Shown: positions 45,501-57,500, numbered from the stretch's first letter. The stretch is 64,000 bases of DNA from Macrostomum lignano (GCA_002269645.1 NIVC01000056.1:682001-746000), one strand, 5' to 3'. Translations and numbers: made by a program. The notes: a model not told the origin generated them from the sequence alone.

Positions 45501-48500
45501 TGCCTAATATCTAAAGATCAATGCATATACAATATTTTGTGGATTTTATTGATTAGTTCGGTTCCTGTCCCAGACGTACCCAGTTCGGCACAGGGTGCGA
45601 TTCAGCGTCTCTGTGATGATAGTTGAGCACGATCACCGTGAATACGACTGATAGACTGCACATGATCATGGTGCACGCAAAGTACATGCCTAAAATTGAT
45701 TTAAAAGCAGATTTTTTGTTTAGTTTTTTAAGGCTACAATTGATATTCATGCTAAACAGTTTTTTAAGAATGCTTACTGCATCACTAAAAAGCTTTAACC
45801 ATTCACCATCTAGAAATGCACATGGAAGCAATCCAAAATCGCAACACAATCCACATGGAAGCAATCTGACATTCAACAACAATCCACATGTAAGCAATCT
45901 GCAATCGTAACACAATCCACATGGAAGCAATCTGACATTCAACAACAATCCACATGTAAGCAATCCGCCATTCAACAACAATCCACATGGAAGCAATCTG
46001 ACATTCAACAAAAATCCACATGGAAGCAATCTGACATTCAACAACAATCCACATGTAAGCAATCTGCAATCGTAACACAATCCACATGGAAGCAATCTGA
46101 CATTCAACAACAATCCACATGTAAGCAATCCGCCATTCAACAACAATCCACATGGAAGCAATCTGACATTCAACAAAAATCCACATGGAAGCAAGCTGAC
46201 ATTCAACAACAATCCACATGGAAGCAATCTGACATTAAACAACAATCCACATGGAAGCAAGCTGACATTCAACAACGATCCACATGGAAGCAATCTGACA
46301 TTCAACAAAAAGCCACATGGAAGCAATCTGACATTAAACAACAATCCACATGGAAGCAAGCTGACATTCAACAACGATCCACATGGAAGCAATCTGACAT
46401 TCAACAAAAAGCCACATGGAAGCAATCTGACATTCAACAAAAATCCACATGGAAGCAATCTGACATTCAACAACAATCCACATGGAAGCAATCTGACATT
46501 CAACAAAAATCCACATGGAAGCAATCTGACATTCAACAAAAATCCACATGGAAGCAATCTGACATTCAACAACAATCCACAGGGAAGCAATCTGACATTC
46601 AACAACAATCCACATGGAAGCAATCTGACATTCAACAAAAATCCACATGGAAGCAATCTGACATTCAACAACAATCCACAGGGAAGCAATCTGCAATCGT
46701 AACACAATCCACATGGAAGCAATCCACAATCACAACACAATCCACATGGAAGCAATCCACAATCACAACACAATCCACATGGAAGCAATCCACATGGAAG
46801 CAATCCACAATCACAACACAATTCACATTGAAGCAATACACTATTCAACAACAATCCACTTGGAAGCAGCCCTTCATTTAACAACAACCCATGTGGAAGC
46901 AATTCACTATTTAACAACAATCTGCATGGAAGCAGCTCTTCATTCCACGTGATTTTTCATTTCAAACATTCTTTAAATTGCCAAACCAATAGTAGTAATA
47001 AAACAAATTCGAAATAAAACTCAAAACAAAAATTACAAGAAAGGTTATTAATAGTGCATAAACGGTGCCCCCTCCCATTGTCTCACCAATAACGGGAACC
47101 GCATCCGAAGTCGGTGGCATGGCCTCGGCCACCATCATGAGAAACACGGTCAAGGACAACAGGATGGTAACACCTGTGCTCGCCAATTCGAATGTTGTCC
47201 CATAGCGAAGGTGAGAAACAAAGGATATCGAAAATTAACAAAAAAATCGTTGCATTGTATTTGTGCTTTGCAACATTTAAACAAAAATTTACGATTATCA
47301 AGTCATTAATTTTACAACGTATTTCGCGCACACCTACACTGTTCTATCGCTAGAAACAATTTATTTTCAAAAACTAAAAAAGTGTGCATGGCTGGTAAGA
47401 TTGGCAGGCACGGAATGACCGGATCGTTTTGCCAAAATTGATTTTCAAATAAATTAAATAAAACAAATATTAATATAAAAAAACGCGTTAAACTTACAGT
47501 TAAACAAAATTGACGTTGTTACGTATGATTAAAAGATATTAATTATTTTGAAAATGAGAAGTCAGCAAACGATTTAAACAAAATTGTTTTTACTTGCTTT
47601 AAAACTGTTAGCTCACCAATAAGTGGCACCGCTTCGGAAGTCTGCGGCATTGCGTCAGCCACCAGTAGTTGAAACATTGTTAACGACAACATTATTGTCA
47701 CTCCTAGAGTTGTCATTGAAATGTACTTTTACTGCAAATTATAGATTATAGCAAATTATATAGGCCATGCTACAACAGCTAGTTATGAATGGGCTTATGT
47801 TCTACTACAGTTTTAGGTAAGAACAGTGCGCAGTGCTGGGTAAGTTTTTTTGTGAAAATTTTTACTTCAAATTCGTTGATCTGTTTAGAGTGTGCACCAT
47901 AGAAACTCCACCTGTTAGACAGAATTTACACACACCTGTTAGACACAAGCTACACACACCTGTTAGACACAAGCTACACACCTGTTAGACACAAGCTACA
48001 CACCTGTTAGACACAAGCTACACACACCTGTTAGACAAAAGCTACACACCTGTTAGACACAAGCTACACACACCTGTTAGACACAAGCTACACACCTGTT
48101 AGACAGAAGCTACACACCTGTTAGACACAAGCTACACACACCTGTTAGACAAAAGCTACACACCTGTTAGACACAAGCTACACACACCTGTTAGACACAA
48201 GCTACACACCTGTTAGACACAAGCTACACACCTGTTAGACACAAGCTACACACACCTGTTAGACACAAGCTACACACCTGTTAGACACAAGCTAGATATA
48301 AACACACGTCTTTTGCTACGAGTAAACTTCTTTTAGTGTAGTTCCAAACTTATACGAGCAGGTAGCTACGACACAACTCGTAGCAGGTAGATAATAGAAA
48401 TGCATGCGACAGAAAGTGCTCATGCAACAATAAGTTTGATTAAATGACAAAAATATCAACTTTAAACTAAGCTTTCTATTCCGATTGTTACAAATATAAA

Positions 48501-54500: not shown

Positions 54501-57500
54501 AGGAAGAATTGTAAAAAACGGGACTACAATACTATAGAATGCTTTTCTGGATACATTTGACCAGCCGATGACCAAGATGCGAGGGTTAAAAAAGCCTTCG
54601 GGAGTTCACTAATGGATAGATAGCAGGTTTTCCCGTGCGTTGCAATCTAATCAACTTCATCAGCATCCACAAGCGCCATTATAGCCTGATATTGCAATCA
54701 TTTTTGTCTCCATATGTGTAAAAAAGGTTTAACAAAACTGGGGATTGAAAAGTGCTCACTTTGTCGTTGCATGCATCGGTAAAGACGATTTTTGTCCAGG
54801 AATTTCTAACCTATGCTCACAAACATTCACATCAAGCCAGAAAAATCAGAACACAGTTTTAAAACAAAAATGCAGACTGTTATTTTTTTGGCAAGAGAAA
54901 TGAAATTGGAAATGTTTTTGCCAAATACGAAACCACTACCGAGTGTTATAGTAGAGATTAAAACAAAGCTACGAAATTTAAAAAATATCATCAACCGATG
55001 CAATCGCATTATCGCAGTCAGGGCAAAGATGGAATACTGACTGTGTCAAGCCACATGTTGGTGTAAATTATTTGCAATCTTTCGTCCTGAACAAGAAAAG
55101 TGAAAATGTGAGCAGTTATTGCGACTTTTTTGTTGTTATGAGAATTGTGCAAACACCTATAAAACAAATCTTTGTTCAGCAGTAGTAAGTAACATGTACT
55201 TTCTGGGCTTGGAAAAAGCTTAGAGAACTCCAGTAATGCCTGTATTTGTGTTGTGCCCGGGTGCACTTGCTCCGATGAGCAATCTCTGGCTCTTGGTCAA
55301 GTGTGCCCGGCATTGCACTCCCACCCATCCCGGCCGCGTGCCAGCGCCAACCCCCCCGTTCTGTCTGCGCCAACCCCCCCATTCTGTCTGCGCCAACCCC
55401 CCCATTCTGTCTGCGTCAACCCCCCCCCATTCTGTCTGCGCCAACCCCCCATTCTGTCTGCGTCAACCCCCCCCCATTCTGTCTGCGCCAACCCCCCCAT
55501 TCTGTCTGCGTCAACCCCCCCCCCCCATTCTGTCTGCGCCAACCCCCTCATTCTGTCTGCGTCAACCCCCCCCCATTCTGTCTGCGCCAACCCCTCCATT
55601 CTGTCTGCGTCAACCCCCCCCCTTCTGTCTGCGTCAACCCCCCCCATTCTGTCTGCGCCAACCCCCCCCCCATTCTGTCTGCGTCAACCCCCCCCATTCT
55701 GTCTGCGTCAACCCCCCCCAGTTGCACCCACCTCACTGTCTGTTAGGTCAGCCGGTTTTGGCTGGCTGCGGCTCCAGTGCGCCCCCTCGCTCGCCCTGCG
55801 ATTGGCTGATGGCCCAGCCAATCGGTTTGTATTCTTTCCCCCCTCCAATCGCAATCCCGACTTTGTAACTTTTATAAGACGATCGTAATTTTGGCTAGCT
55901 GGGCCTGGGGTAGCGATACCCTAGGGCTTAACCAGCTAGTTTAATTAAATATAAATGTGTGCAGGAGCGGCGGTAGGGGAGGCATCTGTTTGGTTGAATT
56001 GTGCAAGACACAGCGAAGTTAAGTGAAGCCTCCCCTACTGCCGTTGCCGCTGCTTCGTGAAGATAAAGAGTGAGTCGCGCGTTTTTCTTATTTGAGGGAC
56101 TGGCGGGGATTAATTCGTGCAATAGGGACGGGCTGATCAAGACTCTTGACGCGATCCCTCGCTCAGAGTCCGAAGTCAGTCCGGCCAGTTGACTGACGCC
56201 ATCTTCGGCTCGTTCACTGAGGTACCTGGTAATCAGAGTCGCGATCCGGCCTGTAGCACAACATTTGCTAACAACAAGAACTAACAAGTTTATCAATTAA
56301 GCTACCTGAGACAGCAAGCAATCAAGCAAAGCAGTGGTCTAGCGCAGCGCTCTGATGTGCCAGCGGCCCAGGCTCGATTCCAAGTGCAGTCACATTAATT
56401 TGTGGCTACATTGGAATCTCTGCTCGTGCAATTAACGCCCTTGAGGCCCAACCCCCAAGGCACAGTGAAGTGTACATGCCTAACGATAAATAAAGTTAGG
56501 GCCGCTGTACACTCCTGTGTGAGTGTGTGCCTGCGCGTATGACTGCGTACGTATCCGCGCGCTTGTGTGCCTGCTCAGGGGAGTCGGCGGAATGGGGGCA
56601 GCAATGCCTCTCACTGGTTGTGTGACAATGTCGCTAAAAGTGCGCCAGGGTGCACACAGCCTCCTGCCTTTCATAAAAGGTCTCTTCAGTGCATTTTTTT
56701 CTCGATCATATCTTTGCAAACTCGGTTTTGGAAACAAAACTGTATTATGACTGTTGCCGCTCTCAAAGCACCAACTTGCTTCATTTGGAAATCGGCAGTT
56801 TAGAAAGTCAGATACTGGGACGAATTGAGTTCTTTTAAACACTGAATGCTTTTCTATCTCGCTAGCAAATTTTGCAGTGAGAACAGCAGCCTTGGGCGAA
56901 ATTTGCACGACTTCTCCTGCTCCTGGTGCCTTCTCTCGCTCACAACAAGCAGCATAGCAGCCGTGTTCATCTCTAAAACCTTCAACTTCTTCTTTCATTT
57001 TCTGCACCACGGCTGCTGCTGCTGCGAGTGAAATCAAGCGATAGCCTGTGGAGATGGGTGGAATTGGGAAAGAGGGAAGGGGAGAGGGTGAAAGTAAGAA
57101 AACTCATATTGTGGCGAGCTGGTCAGCTTAAACTCAATCGCAATCGCAATATTTTGCCTGGCGCAGGTCTCTAGGTGGCCTCTATGTATGCAAAAATAGA
57201 GTAAAGTCTGCAGCTATGCTGGTAACAGTTGCGTACTATTAGACTGCAGAGAGGCAGATTGAGGAAACTACTTATTAAAGCAGCTGGAAAATTGATATTG
57301 TTTCTTAGTTTTAGATAAGATTTACTGTAGGACATTGTGGCAATATATTTAATTATTTACCCAATAATTAGAAATTTATTTAACTGATTTGAGTGAATCA
57401 CTGATAAGAGAGTAACTCACTAATAAGAATGACTCACTGATAAGAGTGACTGTCTGATAAGAGTGACTGACTGATAAGAGTGACTCACTGACAAGAGAGT

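Follow-up and report, generated by a model that had tools for sequence, protein, structure and literature searches.

Three tandemly duplicated exons, probably kept as alternative coding modules, in an alpha7-like nicotinic receptor gene of the flatworm Macrostomum lignano

We analysed a 64,000-nucleotide (nt) stretch of the Macrostomum lignano genome (GCA_002269645.1, NIVC01000056.1:682001–746000; hereafter the window, with positions counted from its first letter), which contains a complete 10-exon gene for a nicotinic acetylcholine receptor (nAChR) subunit. Exons 3, 7 and 8 of this gene are each present as two diverged tandem copies, here called a and b. We conclude that the gene is intact and that, most probably, the three exons were duplicated in tandem long ago and both copies of each were kept as alternative coding exons. 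The alternative-exon device itself is already known and is not mechanistically new; the flatworm gene carries the insect alpha6-type device plus a third cassette (loop C/M1), which appears to be an old spiralian feature.

By its sequence, the gene is an alpha7-like (insect alpha6/ACR-16-like) nAChR alpha subunit, as had been proposed in an earlier note on this stretch that was made from the sequence alone. The assembled product of 561 amino acids (aa) matches the Pfam domains Neur_chan_LBD (PF02931; residues 25–257, E = 1.8e-63) and Neur_chan_memb (PF02932; residues 264–551, E = 2.3e-53). Exon 5 encodes a Cys-loop of the form C-x13-C, and the vicinal-cysteine motif of alpha subunits (YDCC) is present in both 7a and 7b. 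Also readable from the sequence are the GEK motif that carries the −1′ Glu and an acidic residue at 20′ (E in 8b and D in 8a). The best protein matches are from M. lignano itself, followed by alpha7-like, insect alpha6 and ACR-16-like subunits of nemerteans, brachiopods, molluscs, annelids and arthropods; all named top matches bear alpha7, alpha6 or acr-16 names, with E values down to 1e-135 outside Macrostomum.

Exons were called by stop-to-stop translation and inspection of splice sites, with exons 1 and 10 added to complete the gene, which spans 42564–60567 on the minus strand (Table 1). The interval given in the earlier note, 47087–55086, spans the cassettes and not the whole gene. The exons are paired (45/45, 195/195 and 87/87 nt) at the positions where it had placed them, and their order along the gene, 3a-3b ... 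7a-7b-8a-8b, bears out three independent single-exon tandem duplications. All six copies have an AG acceptor, a GT donor and no stop codon, and the members of a pair are equal in length and phase (3a and 3b are both in phase 0). Each of the eight exon combinations assembles to a 1686-nt open reading frame that encodes 561 aa and ends at one stop. No other exon (1, 2, 4, 5(+6), 9 or 10) is duplicated, and a relaxed tblastn search of 42–61 kb found no third copy of any exon, in agreement with the note's reading of the locus as one gene. Homology between the variants was recovered by tblastn (E = 1e-8 to 1e-23). The two exon 3 copies share 53% of their nucleotides and likewise 53% of their amino acids, those of exon 7 share 62% and 59%, and those of exon 8 share 73% and 68%. 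Copies only 53–73% identical in nucleotides are too diverged to be an assembly or haplotype duplicate and are unlike the exact duplications elsewhere in the window from which the note had set them apart (for example, 477–1415 = 2081–3019 at 100%). In each pair we regard b as the canonical, ancestral form and a as the derived one. The sizes of exons 3, 4, 7, 8 and 9 (45, 110, 195, 87 and 110 nt) match those of human CHRNA7, which speaks for orthologous intron positions; unlike in the flatworm gene, exons 3, 7 and 8 of vertebrate alpha7 are single, and exons 5 and 6 are separate.

Table 1 Exons of the nAChR gene, and intronic elements and repeat arrays, in window coordinates
Feature	Position	Strand	Length (nt)	Description
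Exon 1	60510..60567	-		ATG and signal peptide; donor GTGAGT; ends in phase 1
Exon 2	57717..57865	-	149	N-terminal helix, ends SLQQIIDV; single copy
Exon 3a	55042..55086	-	45	Derived variant of loop D exon; acceptor ...ttgttcag, donor GTCAGT
Exon 3b	54206..54250	-	45	Canonical loop D exon
Exon 4	52866..52975	-	110	Single copy
Exon 5	52022..52338	-	317	Equals vertebrate alpha7 exons 5+6 fused; holds Cys-loop; single copy
Exon 7a	50042..50236	-	195	Loop C (YDCC), pre-M1, M1, M1–M2 loop; 'RRRK...' type
Exon 7b	49115..49309	-	195	Canonical type of exon 7
Exon 8a	47617..47703	-	87	M2 pore helix and M2–M3 linker, flatworm type
Exon 8b	47087..47173	-	87	Canonical M2 exon
Exon 9	45580..45689	-	110	M3; donor GTACGT; single copy
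Exon 10	42564..43178	-	615	Includes stop; cytoplasmic loop, M4, C terminus ...SAPDVFKG
Inverted-repeat arm 1	49675..49691		17	Intron 7a–7b; perfect over 17 bp, 45 nt at 71% when extended
Inverted-repeat arm 2	47386..47402		17	Intron 8a–8b; partner of arm 1
Micro-/minisatellite arrays	45815-46790, 47909-48294, 50468-50890, 53405-53912, 55344-55720, 57383-57610, 58925-59440, 60069-60466, 61612-63221			

Comparison with paralogues indicates that the variants have been maintained for a long time. Two M. lignano loci were compared with the window gene: L002 (NIVC01004192.1; gene of P0003) and L001 (NIVC01004712.1; gene of P0001). L002 is 75–81% identical to the window gene in the constitutive exons and has six counterparts (3a′, 3b, 7a′, 7b′, 8a′ and 8b′) arranged as in that gene, with lengths of 45, 195 or 87 nt and intact splice sites. 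In amino acid sequence, 7a is 70% identical to 7a′ versus 56% to 7b′, 7b is 80% identical to 7b′, 8a is 93% identical to 8a′ versus 68% to 8b′, and 8b is 93% identical to 8b′ versus 61% to 8a′; exon 3b is 100% identical in L001 and L002. A third paralogue (P0012 model) also holds both 7a- and 7b-type exons. All three pairs are older than the divergence of the M. lignano paralogues. In the dN/dS comparison suggested in the earlier note, synonymous divergence (dS) between the window gene and L002 was above 1.3 or not computable (saturated), and nonsynonymous divergence (dN) was 0–0.19 for 7a, 7b, 8a, 8b and 3b, and 0.33 for 3a. The five variants with low dN are under purifying selection between the two genes. 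Length, frame and splice sites were kept over saturated dS, as they would not be in unused exons. L001 (10869–14826) is a compact gene with single 3b-, 7b- and 8a-type exons, having lost its alternatives after gene duplication. The monogenean Cichlidogyrus likewise has a compact gene with single exons of these types, and in both cases a single isoform seems to have become fixed once the gene had been duplicated.

Public gene models and precedents bear on how the copies are used. The UniRef M. lignano model P0002, which is 100% identical to the window in exon 4 and near-identical in the other exons covered, joins 7a to 8b, and P0174, from a near-identical copy of the same gene, likewise joins 7a to 8b, taking one of each; NCBI models of the paralogues read 3b+7b+8a. 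In insect alpha6, exons 3a/3b and 8a–c have been reported as mutually exclusive by reverse transcription PCR and cDNA sequencing, with occasional co-inclusion, and the arrangement has been dated to the insect radiation (approximately 300 million years). On the strength of the insect precedent, the conservation of all variants in a paralogue, the one-of-each models and the equal-length isoforms of relatives described below, we infer that each mRNA would carry one copy per position (mutually exclusive, or substitution, splicing). In P0002 and P0174, exon 9 is also joined to sites within exon 10, so that the post-M3 segment and a large part of the cytoplasmic loop are missing; the cause would be either alternative 3′ splice sites in exon 10 or misprediction of the models.

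Several observations weigh against exclusive use of two functional copies. An enforcing mechanism was not found among intron lengths, splice sites, nonsense-mediated decay (NMD) and intron pairing. The inter-variant introns measure 791 (exon 3), 732 (exon 7) and 443 nt (exon 8), and all three cassette lengths are divisible by 3, so double inclusion or skipping keeps the frame and NMD cannot remove the products. A blastn-short comparison with L002 returned no conserved intron sequence of the kind expected of docking or selector sites, because the genes are too diverged. Models P0004, P0007 and P0012 co-include 7a and 7b, and P0004 and P0007 also 8a and 8b, probably as artefacts of ab initio prediction. 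The protein-search matches included no Logan or transcriptome protein of the window gene. Exon 3a is the weakest case: beyond its higher dN, it is only 60% identical in amino acids to its positional counterpart 3a′ (DEKKQILITNFWLDQ in L002) and barely closer to 3a′ than to 3b′. The single 3b-, 7b- and 8a-type exons of L001 and Cichlidogyrus indicate that the pairs are dispensable in some gene copies.

Some of these points would fit other accounts of the pairs. If one copy of each pair were a silent pseudo-exon that is never spliced, the gene would make a single protein; the poor conservation of 3a, the sufficiency of single exons in L001 and neodermatan genes, and the weak polypyrimidine tracts of the 8a and 8b acceptors all point that way. 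We nevertheless consider this very improbable, given that the window gene and L002 retain six variants with exact length, frame, AG/GT sites and low dN despite saturated dS, that models choose different copies (7a+8b for the window gene versus 7b+8a for paralogues) and that the annotations of Lineus and Owenia list isoforms with either type of exon 7. Normal inclusion of both copies in a longer protein, as modelled in P0004, P0007 and P0012, seems no less far-fetched. The frame would be kept, such UniRef models exist, exon 8 is present twice in the Drosophila 'type V' variant, and 3a+3b co-inclusion is a real minor or stage-specific product both in Bombyx and in alpha6 of the tick Ixodes ricinus, whose 3a-bearing variant includes 3b as well. 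This tick product makes leaky splicing plausible, but it is non-functional in oocytes; moreover, a second loop C and M1 or a second M2 would be expected from the pentameric ligand-gated channel fold to disrupt the four-helix topology, P0002 and P0174 use one copy each for the window gene, and the RefSeq isoforms of relatives are all equal in length. The least credible account is an assembly artefact in which collapsed paralogues or haplotypes were interleaved in one locus. M. lignano assemblies are duplication-rich, and exact duplications do occur elsewhere in the window, but we rejected this explanation on the low a/b identity noted above, the doubling of only three exons, all of them set in unique intron sequence, the recurrence of the layout on the independent GenBank contig of a paralogue, and the exon 7 pair in chromosome-scale nemertean assemblies. 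Alternative coding use of both copies remains our preferred reading.

The paired exons encode parts of the receptor in which substitutions would be expected to matter, judging from alpha7 structure–function knowledge and the insect alpha6 precedent. The choice of exon 3 would swap the loop D strand (with its conserved Trp) on the complementary agonist-binding face. That of exon 7 would swap loop C (YxCC), pre-M1, M1, the M1–M2 loop and the 3′ residue (L to F), with the −1′ Glu kept, and that of exon 8 the pore-lining M2 from 4′ to 20′ together with the M2–M3 gating linker. With the K of GEK numbered 0′, 8b and 8a differ at 8′ (L in 8b, M in 8a), 13′ (V, M), 15′ (L, Q), 16′ and 17′ (MM, LL) and 20′ (E, D), and their linkers read PPTSDAVPV and PQTSEAVPL, respectively. 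In alpha7-type channels, residues 13′, 16′, 17′ and 20′ belong to the pore lining, and the M2–M3 linker couples binding to gating. Because the differences fall at pore-lining positions and in the linker, altered desensitization, gating and conductance may be expected of the two exon 8 forms. Up to eight subunit isoforms would thereby differ in agonist pharmacology, gating or desensitization, and conductance.

The correspondence with insect alpha6 is close. Alpha6 proteins belong to the same subunit clade and are among the best matches (53–58% identity), and the earlier note's placement of the alternative exons 3 and 8 at equivalent positions agrees with both sequence and literature. Both exons are doubled with the same sizes and boundaries: in both lineages QQIIDV precedes a segment of 15 aa, and GEK..LG precedes a VTI...G unit of 29 aa (the Drosophila exon 3 variants are of that length, and P0034, the Drosophila 'type V' variant, contains the exon 8 unit twice), so that the swapped modules are loop D and M2 in each. 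The flatworm gene differs in having two exon 8 copies versus three in insects, and in its exon 7 pair (loop C to M1), which is unreported in the insect alpha6 literature searched. Insect alpha6 is also described as subject to A-to-I editing. The alpha6 gene of Ixodes ricinus provides an exon 3 pair at the same position in a non-insect; unlike in the flatworm reading, the tick 3a variant co-includes 3b, and an exon 7 pair is unreported in the tick.

Beyond insects, we surveyed cluster members of the best non-flatworm matches for same-length isoforms, which are RefSeq predictions unless a cDNA is named. Exon 3 is swapped in Lineus, Tubulanus (X1/X2), Aplysia (X1/X2), Biomphalaria (X1/X2), Limulus and Parasteatoda, and exon 8 in Lingula (X1/X2), Limulus, Parasteatoda and two Pardosa cDNA variants. 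In genomic sequence, Aplysia (L004) has an alternative exon 3 upstream of the canonical one, and Lingula (L008) has two exon 8 copies that differ by one residue. The exon 7 pair recurs in the nemerteans Lineus and Tubulanus, in which an exon of the type RRRK...(V/L)(S/T)FG lies upstream of the canonical RRRT...ISLG type, both of 195 nt with AG/GT sites. Like Macrostomum, these nemerteans have exons 5 and 6 fused and exon 3 doubled; unlike it, both have a single exon 8, and Lineus has an extra exon 4 pair. The Lineus longissimus isoforms X1–X6 differ at exons 3, 4 and 7, and in the Lineus locus (L003) the 7a-type exon lies approximately 0.8 kb upstream of the 7b-type exon. In Tubulanus polymorphus (L009), the intact 7a-type exon upstream of 7b is in neither listed isoform (X1 or X2). 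The spacing of the exon 3 copies is approximately 103 nt in Lineus (63458–63650) and 308 nt in Tubulanus, versus 791 nt in Macrostomum, and the two Lineus exon 4 copies (70550–70821) lie approximately 52 nt apart. The inter-copy introns of Lineus exons 3 and 4 are short enough for steric exclusion, unlike those of Macrostomum (443–791 nt).

In the annelid Owenia fusiformis, two equal-length products among those annotated as CAH1797306/07/09/10 differ exactly at exon 7 (canonical versus ...LTFG type), as in the flatworm pair; the 7a-like exon of this annotation groups weakly with other 7a-type exons. The third cassette, which the earlier note did not know from insects, is not peculiar to this worm, given the two nemerteans and the Owenia isoforms. 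Among other flatworms, Cichlidogyrus (L007, 5967–6545) has single 7b- and 8a-type exons, and an 8a-type exon is also found in a fragment from the cestode Dibothriocephalus. Its occurrence as the only exon 8 in these two and in L001 indicates that 'LVAD.(M/L)PQTS.A.PLIG' is a flatworm-wide form of M2. A protein search with a 7a+8a peptide gave five matches. A profile search with seven 7a-type exons matched almost exclusively anonymous metagenome exon fragments without taxonomy; 7a-type exons are common in metagenomes, and this search did not map their phyletic spread. One ENA metagenome scaffold (L005, 385–2170) is an animal contig with a 7a-type exon (...ISFG) as its sole exon 7, followed by exons 8 and 9.

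To place the origin of the exon 7 pair, we aligned 31 exon 7 sequences (67 columns, of which 39 form the M1 half) and bootstrapped neighbour-joining trees. A second, more distant nAChR-like gene of the window, at approximately 14750–20415 on the minus strand (the same orientation), served as outgroup; it has Cys-loop, loop C, M1–M2 and M3 exons (one example includes IRRR), and its exon 7 equivalent is split differently. The three Macrostomum 7a copies form a clade (95% bootstrap), as do the four 7b copies (85%). On balance, we judge it rather likely that the pair arose once, before the flatworm–nemertean split. In the M1 half, the canonical 7b-type exons of all phyla are split from all 7a-type exons at 85% and species-wise groupings receive approximately 0%, although long-branch attraction could inflate this split. 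At six columns, a-type and b-type exons of three phyla differ without exception, and at two of these the states are not those of the outgroup (K/R31 in a versus T/V in b, and F65 in a versus L in b). In Macrostomum–Lineus quartets, grouping by type is favoured over grouping by species (6–7 versus 2–4 sites), and the a type lies upstream of the b type in four out of four loci examined (two of M. lignano, Lineus and Tubulanus), covering two phyla. If the origin was single, the loop C half would have co-evolved with, or been gene-converted towards, the partner exon.

The alternative, which bears on the deep-homology part only, is that the pairs arose independently in each phylum, by repeated tandem duplication of the same exons and convergent divergence; we hold this to be possible but clearly the less likely course. 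The likeness of Macrostomum 7a to the RRRK...FG exons of nemerteans and the annelid, and of 8a to certain exon 8 variants of insects, would then reflect convergence or retained ancestral states. A supported clade of all 7a-type exons was not obtained on the full exon 7 (15–17% bootstrap, or 27–28% if the outgroup falls with 7a), and a and b group together within Macrostomum in 24–30% of replicates and within Owenia in 26–28%. The loop C half unites a and b of Macrostomum at 63% and those of Owenia at 43%, and Macrostomum–Owenia quartets favour species over type (4–6 versus 2 sites). The outgroup gene shares L48 with the a type, so part of the a-type signal is retained ancestry. Furthermore, the Lingula exon 8 copies, one residue apart, must be recent or homogenized, which shows that such duplications recur, and the metagenomic contig L005 has the 7a type as its only exon 7. 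Set against these are the split of the M1 half, the diagnostic columns, the Macrostomum–Lineus quartets and the constant a-then-b order, and we retain the single origin as the more likely. Deep conservation and convergence had both been put forward in the earlier note: exon 7 leans to shared ancestry within Spiralia, whereas exons 3 (15 aa) and 8 (29 aa) are too short to decide variant-by-variant orthology with insects. Three hints exist, none of them decisive. DER..MWL is common to exon 3a and the alternative exon 3 of Aplysia but absent from L002 3a′; of the two exon 3 copies in Macrostomum, Aplysia and Lineus, the canonical-like one lies downstream; and AD..PQTSEA.PL, with D20′, is found in 8a as well as in one exon 8 variant of Nilaparvata, which is only suggestive.

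Candidate mechanisms of exon choice were considered in turn. Steric exclusion is unlikely with inter-variant introns of 443–791 nt, U2/U12 incompatibility was rejected because all introns are GT–AG, and policing by NMD was rejected because cassette lengths are divisible by 3. Global RNAduplex folding of whole introns yielded uninformative whole-length duplexes. When local duplexes among the introns between exons 5 and 9 were ranked, the best pairing (−49.9 kcal/mol) was between introns 7a–7b and 8a–8b, at the arms of a perfect 17-bp inverted repeat, the sequence of which occurs once per strand in the window (Table 1). Pairing of the arms would loop out 7b and 8a, bring the 7a donor near the 8b acceptor and favour 7a+8b. 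However, 22 comparable inverted-repeat pairs occur in the 64-kb window, and L002 has a 13-nt complement in the same intron pair that is not among its ten best duplexes, GC-rich interspersed repeats dominating the ranking; we therefore keep the 17-bp stem as a lead only, and consider it doubtful that this candidate pairing directs the choice at exons 7 and 8. The combinations 7a+8b and 7b+8a are the two seen among public one-of-each models. A broader scheme would make the cassettes an ancient protostome, or at the least spiralian, device and not one invented by arthropods, with the exon 7 pair predating the flatworm–nemertean–annelid split, exons 3 and 8 shared with insect alpha6, and the Macrostomum choice at exons 7 and 8 coordinated by the 17-bp pairing (paired, 7a+8b; unpaired, 7b+8a); taken as a whole, we think this unlikely. 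The flatworm–nemertean–annelid split lies more than 500 million years back.

Insect alpha6, at which the insecticide spinosad acts, is a textbook example of how alternative exons (here 3 and 8) diversify a receptor. In the literature searched, alpha6-type alternatives of these exons are limited to the insect radiation and one tick report. Our literature search, of incomplete coverage, found no alternative exons or exon 7 cassette in alpha7-like genes of flatworms, molluscs, annelids or lophotrochozoans in general, and the phrase 'alternative splicing' does not occur in the text of a survey of lophotrochozoan nAChRs; isoforms of nemerteans, molluscs, brachiopods and chelicerates are already public as database predictions. 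The present locus adds the doubling of the exon 3 and 8 modules in a flatworm, and the doubling of one more module, the exon from loop C to M1, together with its maintenance through saturating synonymous divergence. It also shows that the exon 7 pair recurs in nemerteans, where order and diagnostic residues are the same, and probably in an annelid. This raises the question of whether the splicing of alternative agonist-site, M1 and pore exons was an ancestral protostome route to receptor subtypes from one gene, and of how paralogues trade alternative exons for fixed ones, since L001 and neodermatan genes keep only the 3b, 7b and 8a types. The isoforms also offer natural chimeras for structure–function work on alpha7-like channels. 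M. lignano is tractable by transgenesis, and flatworm nAChRs are candidate anthelmintic targets.

The introns of the gene contain further repeats. Imperfect complementarity over approximately 30 nt links introns 5–7a and 7b–8a (51690–51730 and 48635–48690; −49.6 kcal/mol), and its pairing would loop out both exon 7 copies. Intron 7a–7b holds a 49-nt inverted repeat (86% identity; 49732–49780 and 49906–49953, arms approximately 125 nt apart), which looks like a hairpin or a miniature inverted-repeat transposable element. A dispersed repeat of approximately 300 nt has copies that are approximately 94% identical in two introns of the gene (approximately 48785–49085 and 56345–56640), with fragments near 16768–16842 and 19379–19453; one copy begins approximately 25 nt downstream of the 7b donor, and the repeat contains a GGCCCAGGCTCGATTCCAAG motif. 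Its further occurrence in intron 5–7a of the paralogue L002 marks it as an interspersed family, and ARAGORN detected no tRNA-like head in it.

Outside the gene, the exact duplication mentioned above (939 nt) and a tandem duplication (9691–10396 and 10395–11102, 99.3% identity) are possibly artefactual. Micro- and minisatellite arrays occupy nearly every intron of the gene and the upstream region (Table 1; examples are a 33-nt unit ×30, a 46-nt unit ×8.5, (TCCTC)×84, a 17-nt unit ×30, a 23-nt unit ×16, (GACA)×100 and (GATA)×402). The GC and AT skews of the window are explained by several of these arrays, whose two strands differ strongly in composition.

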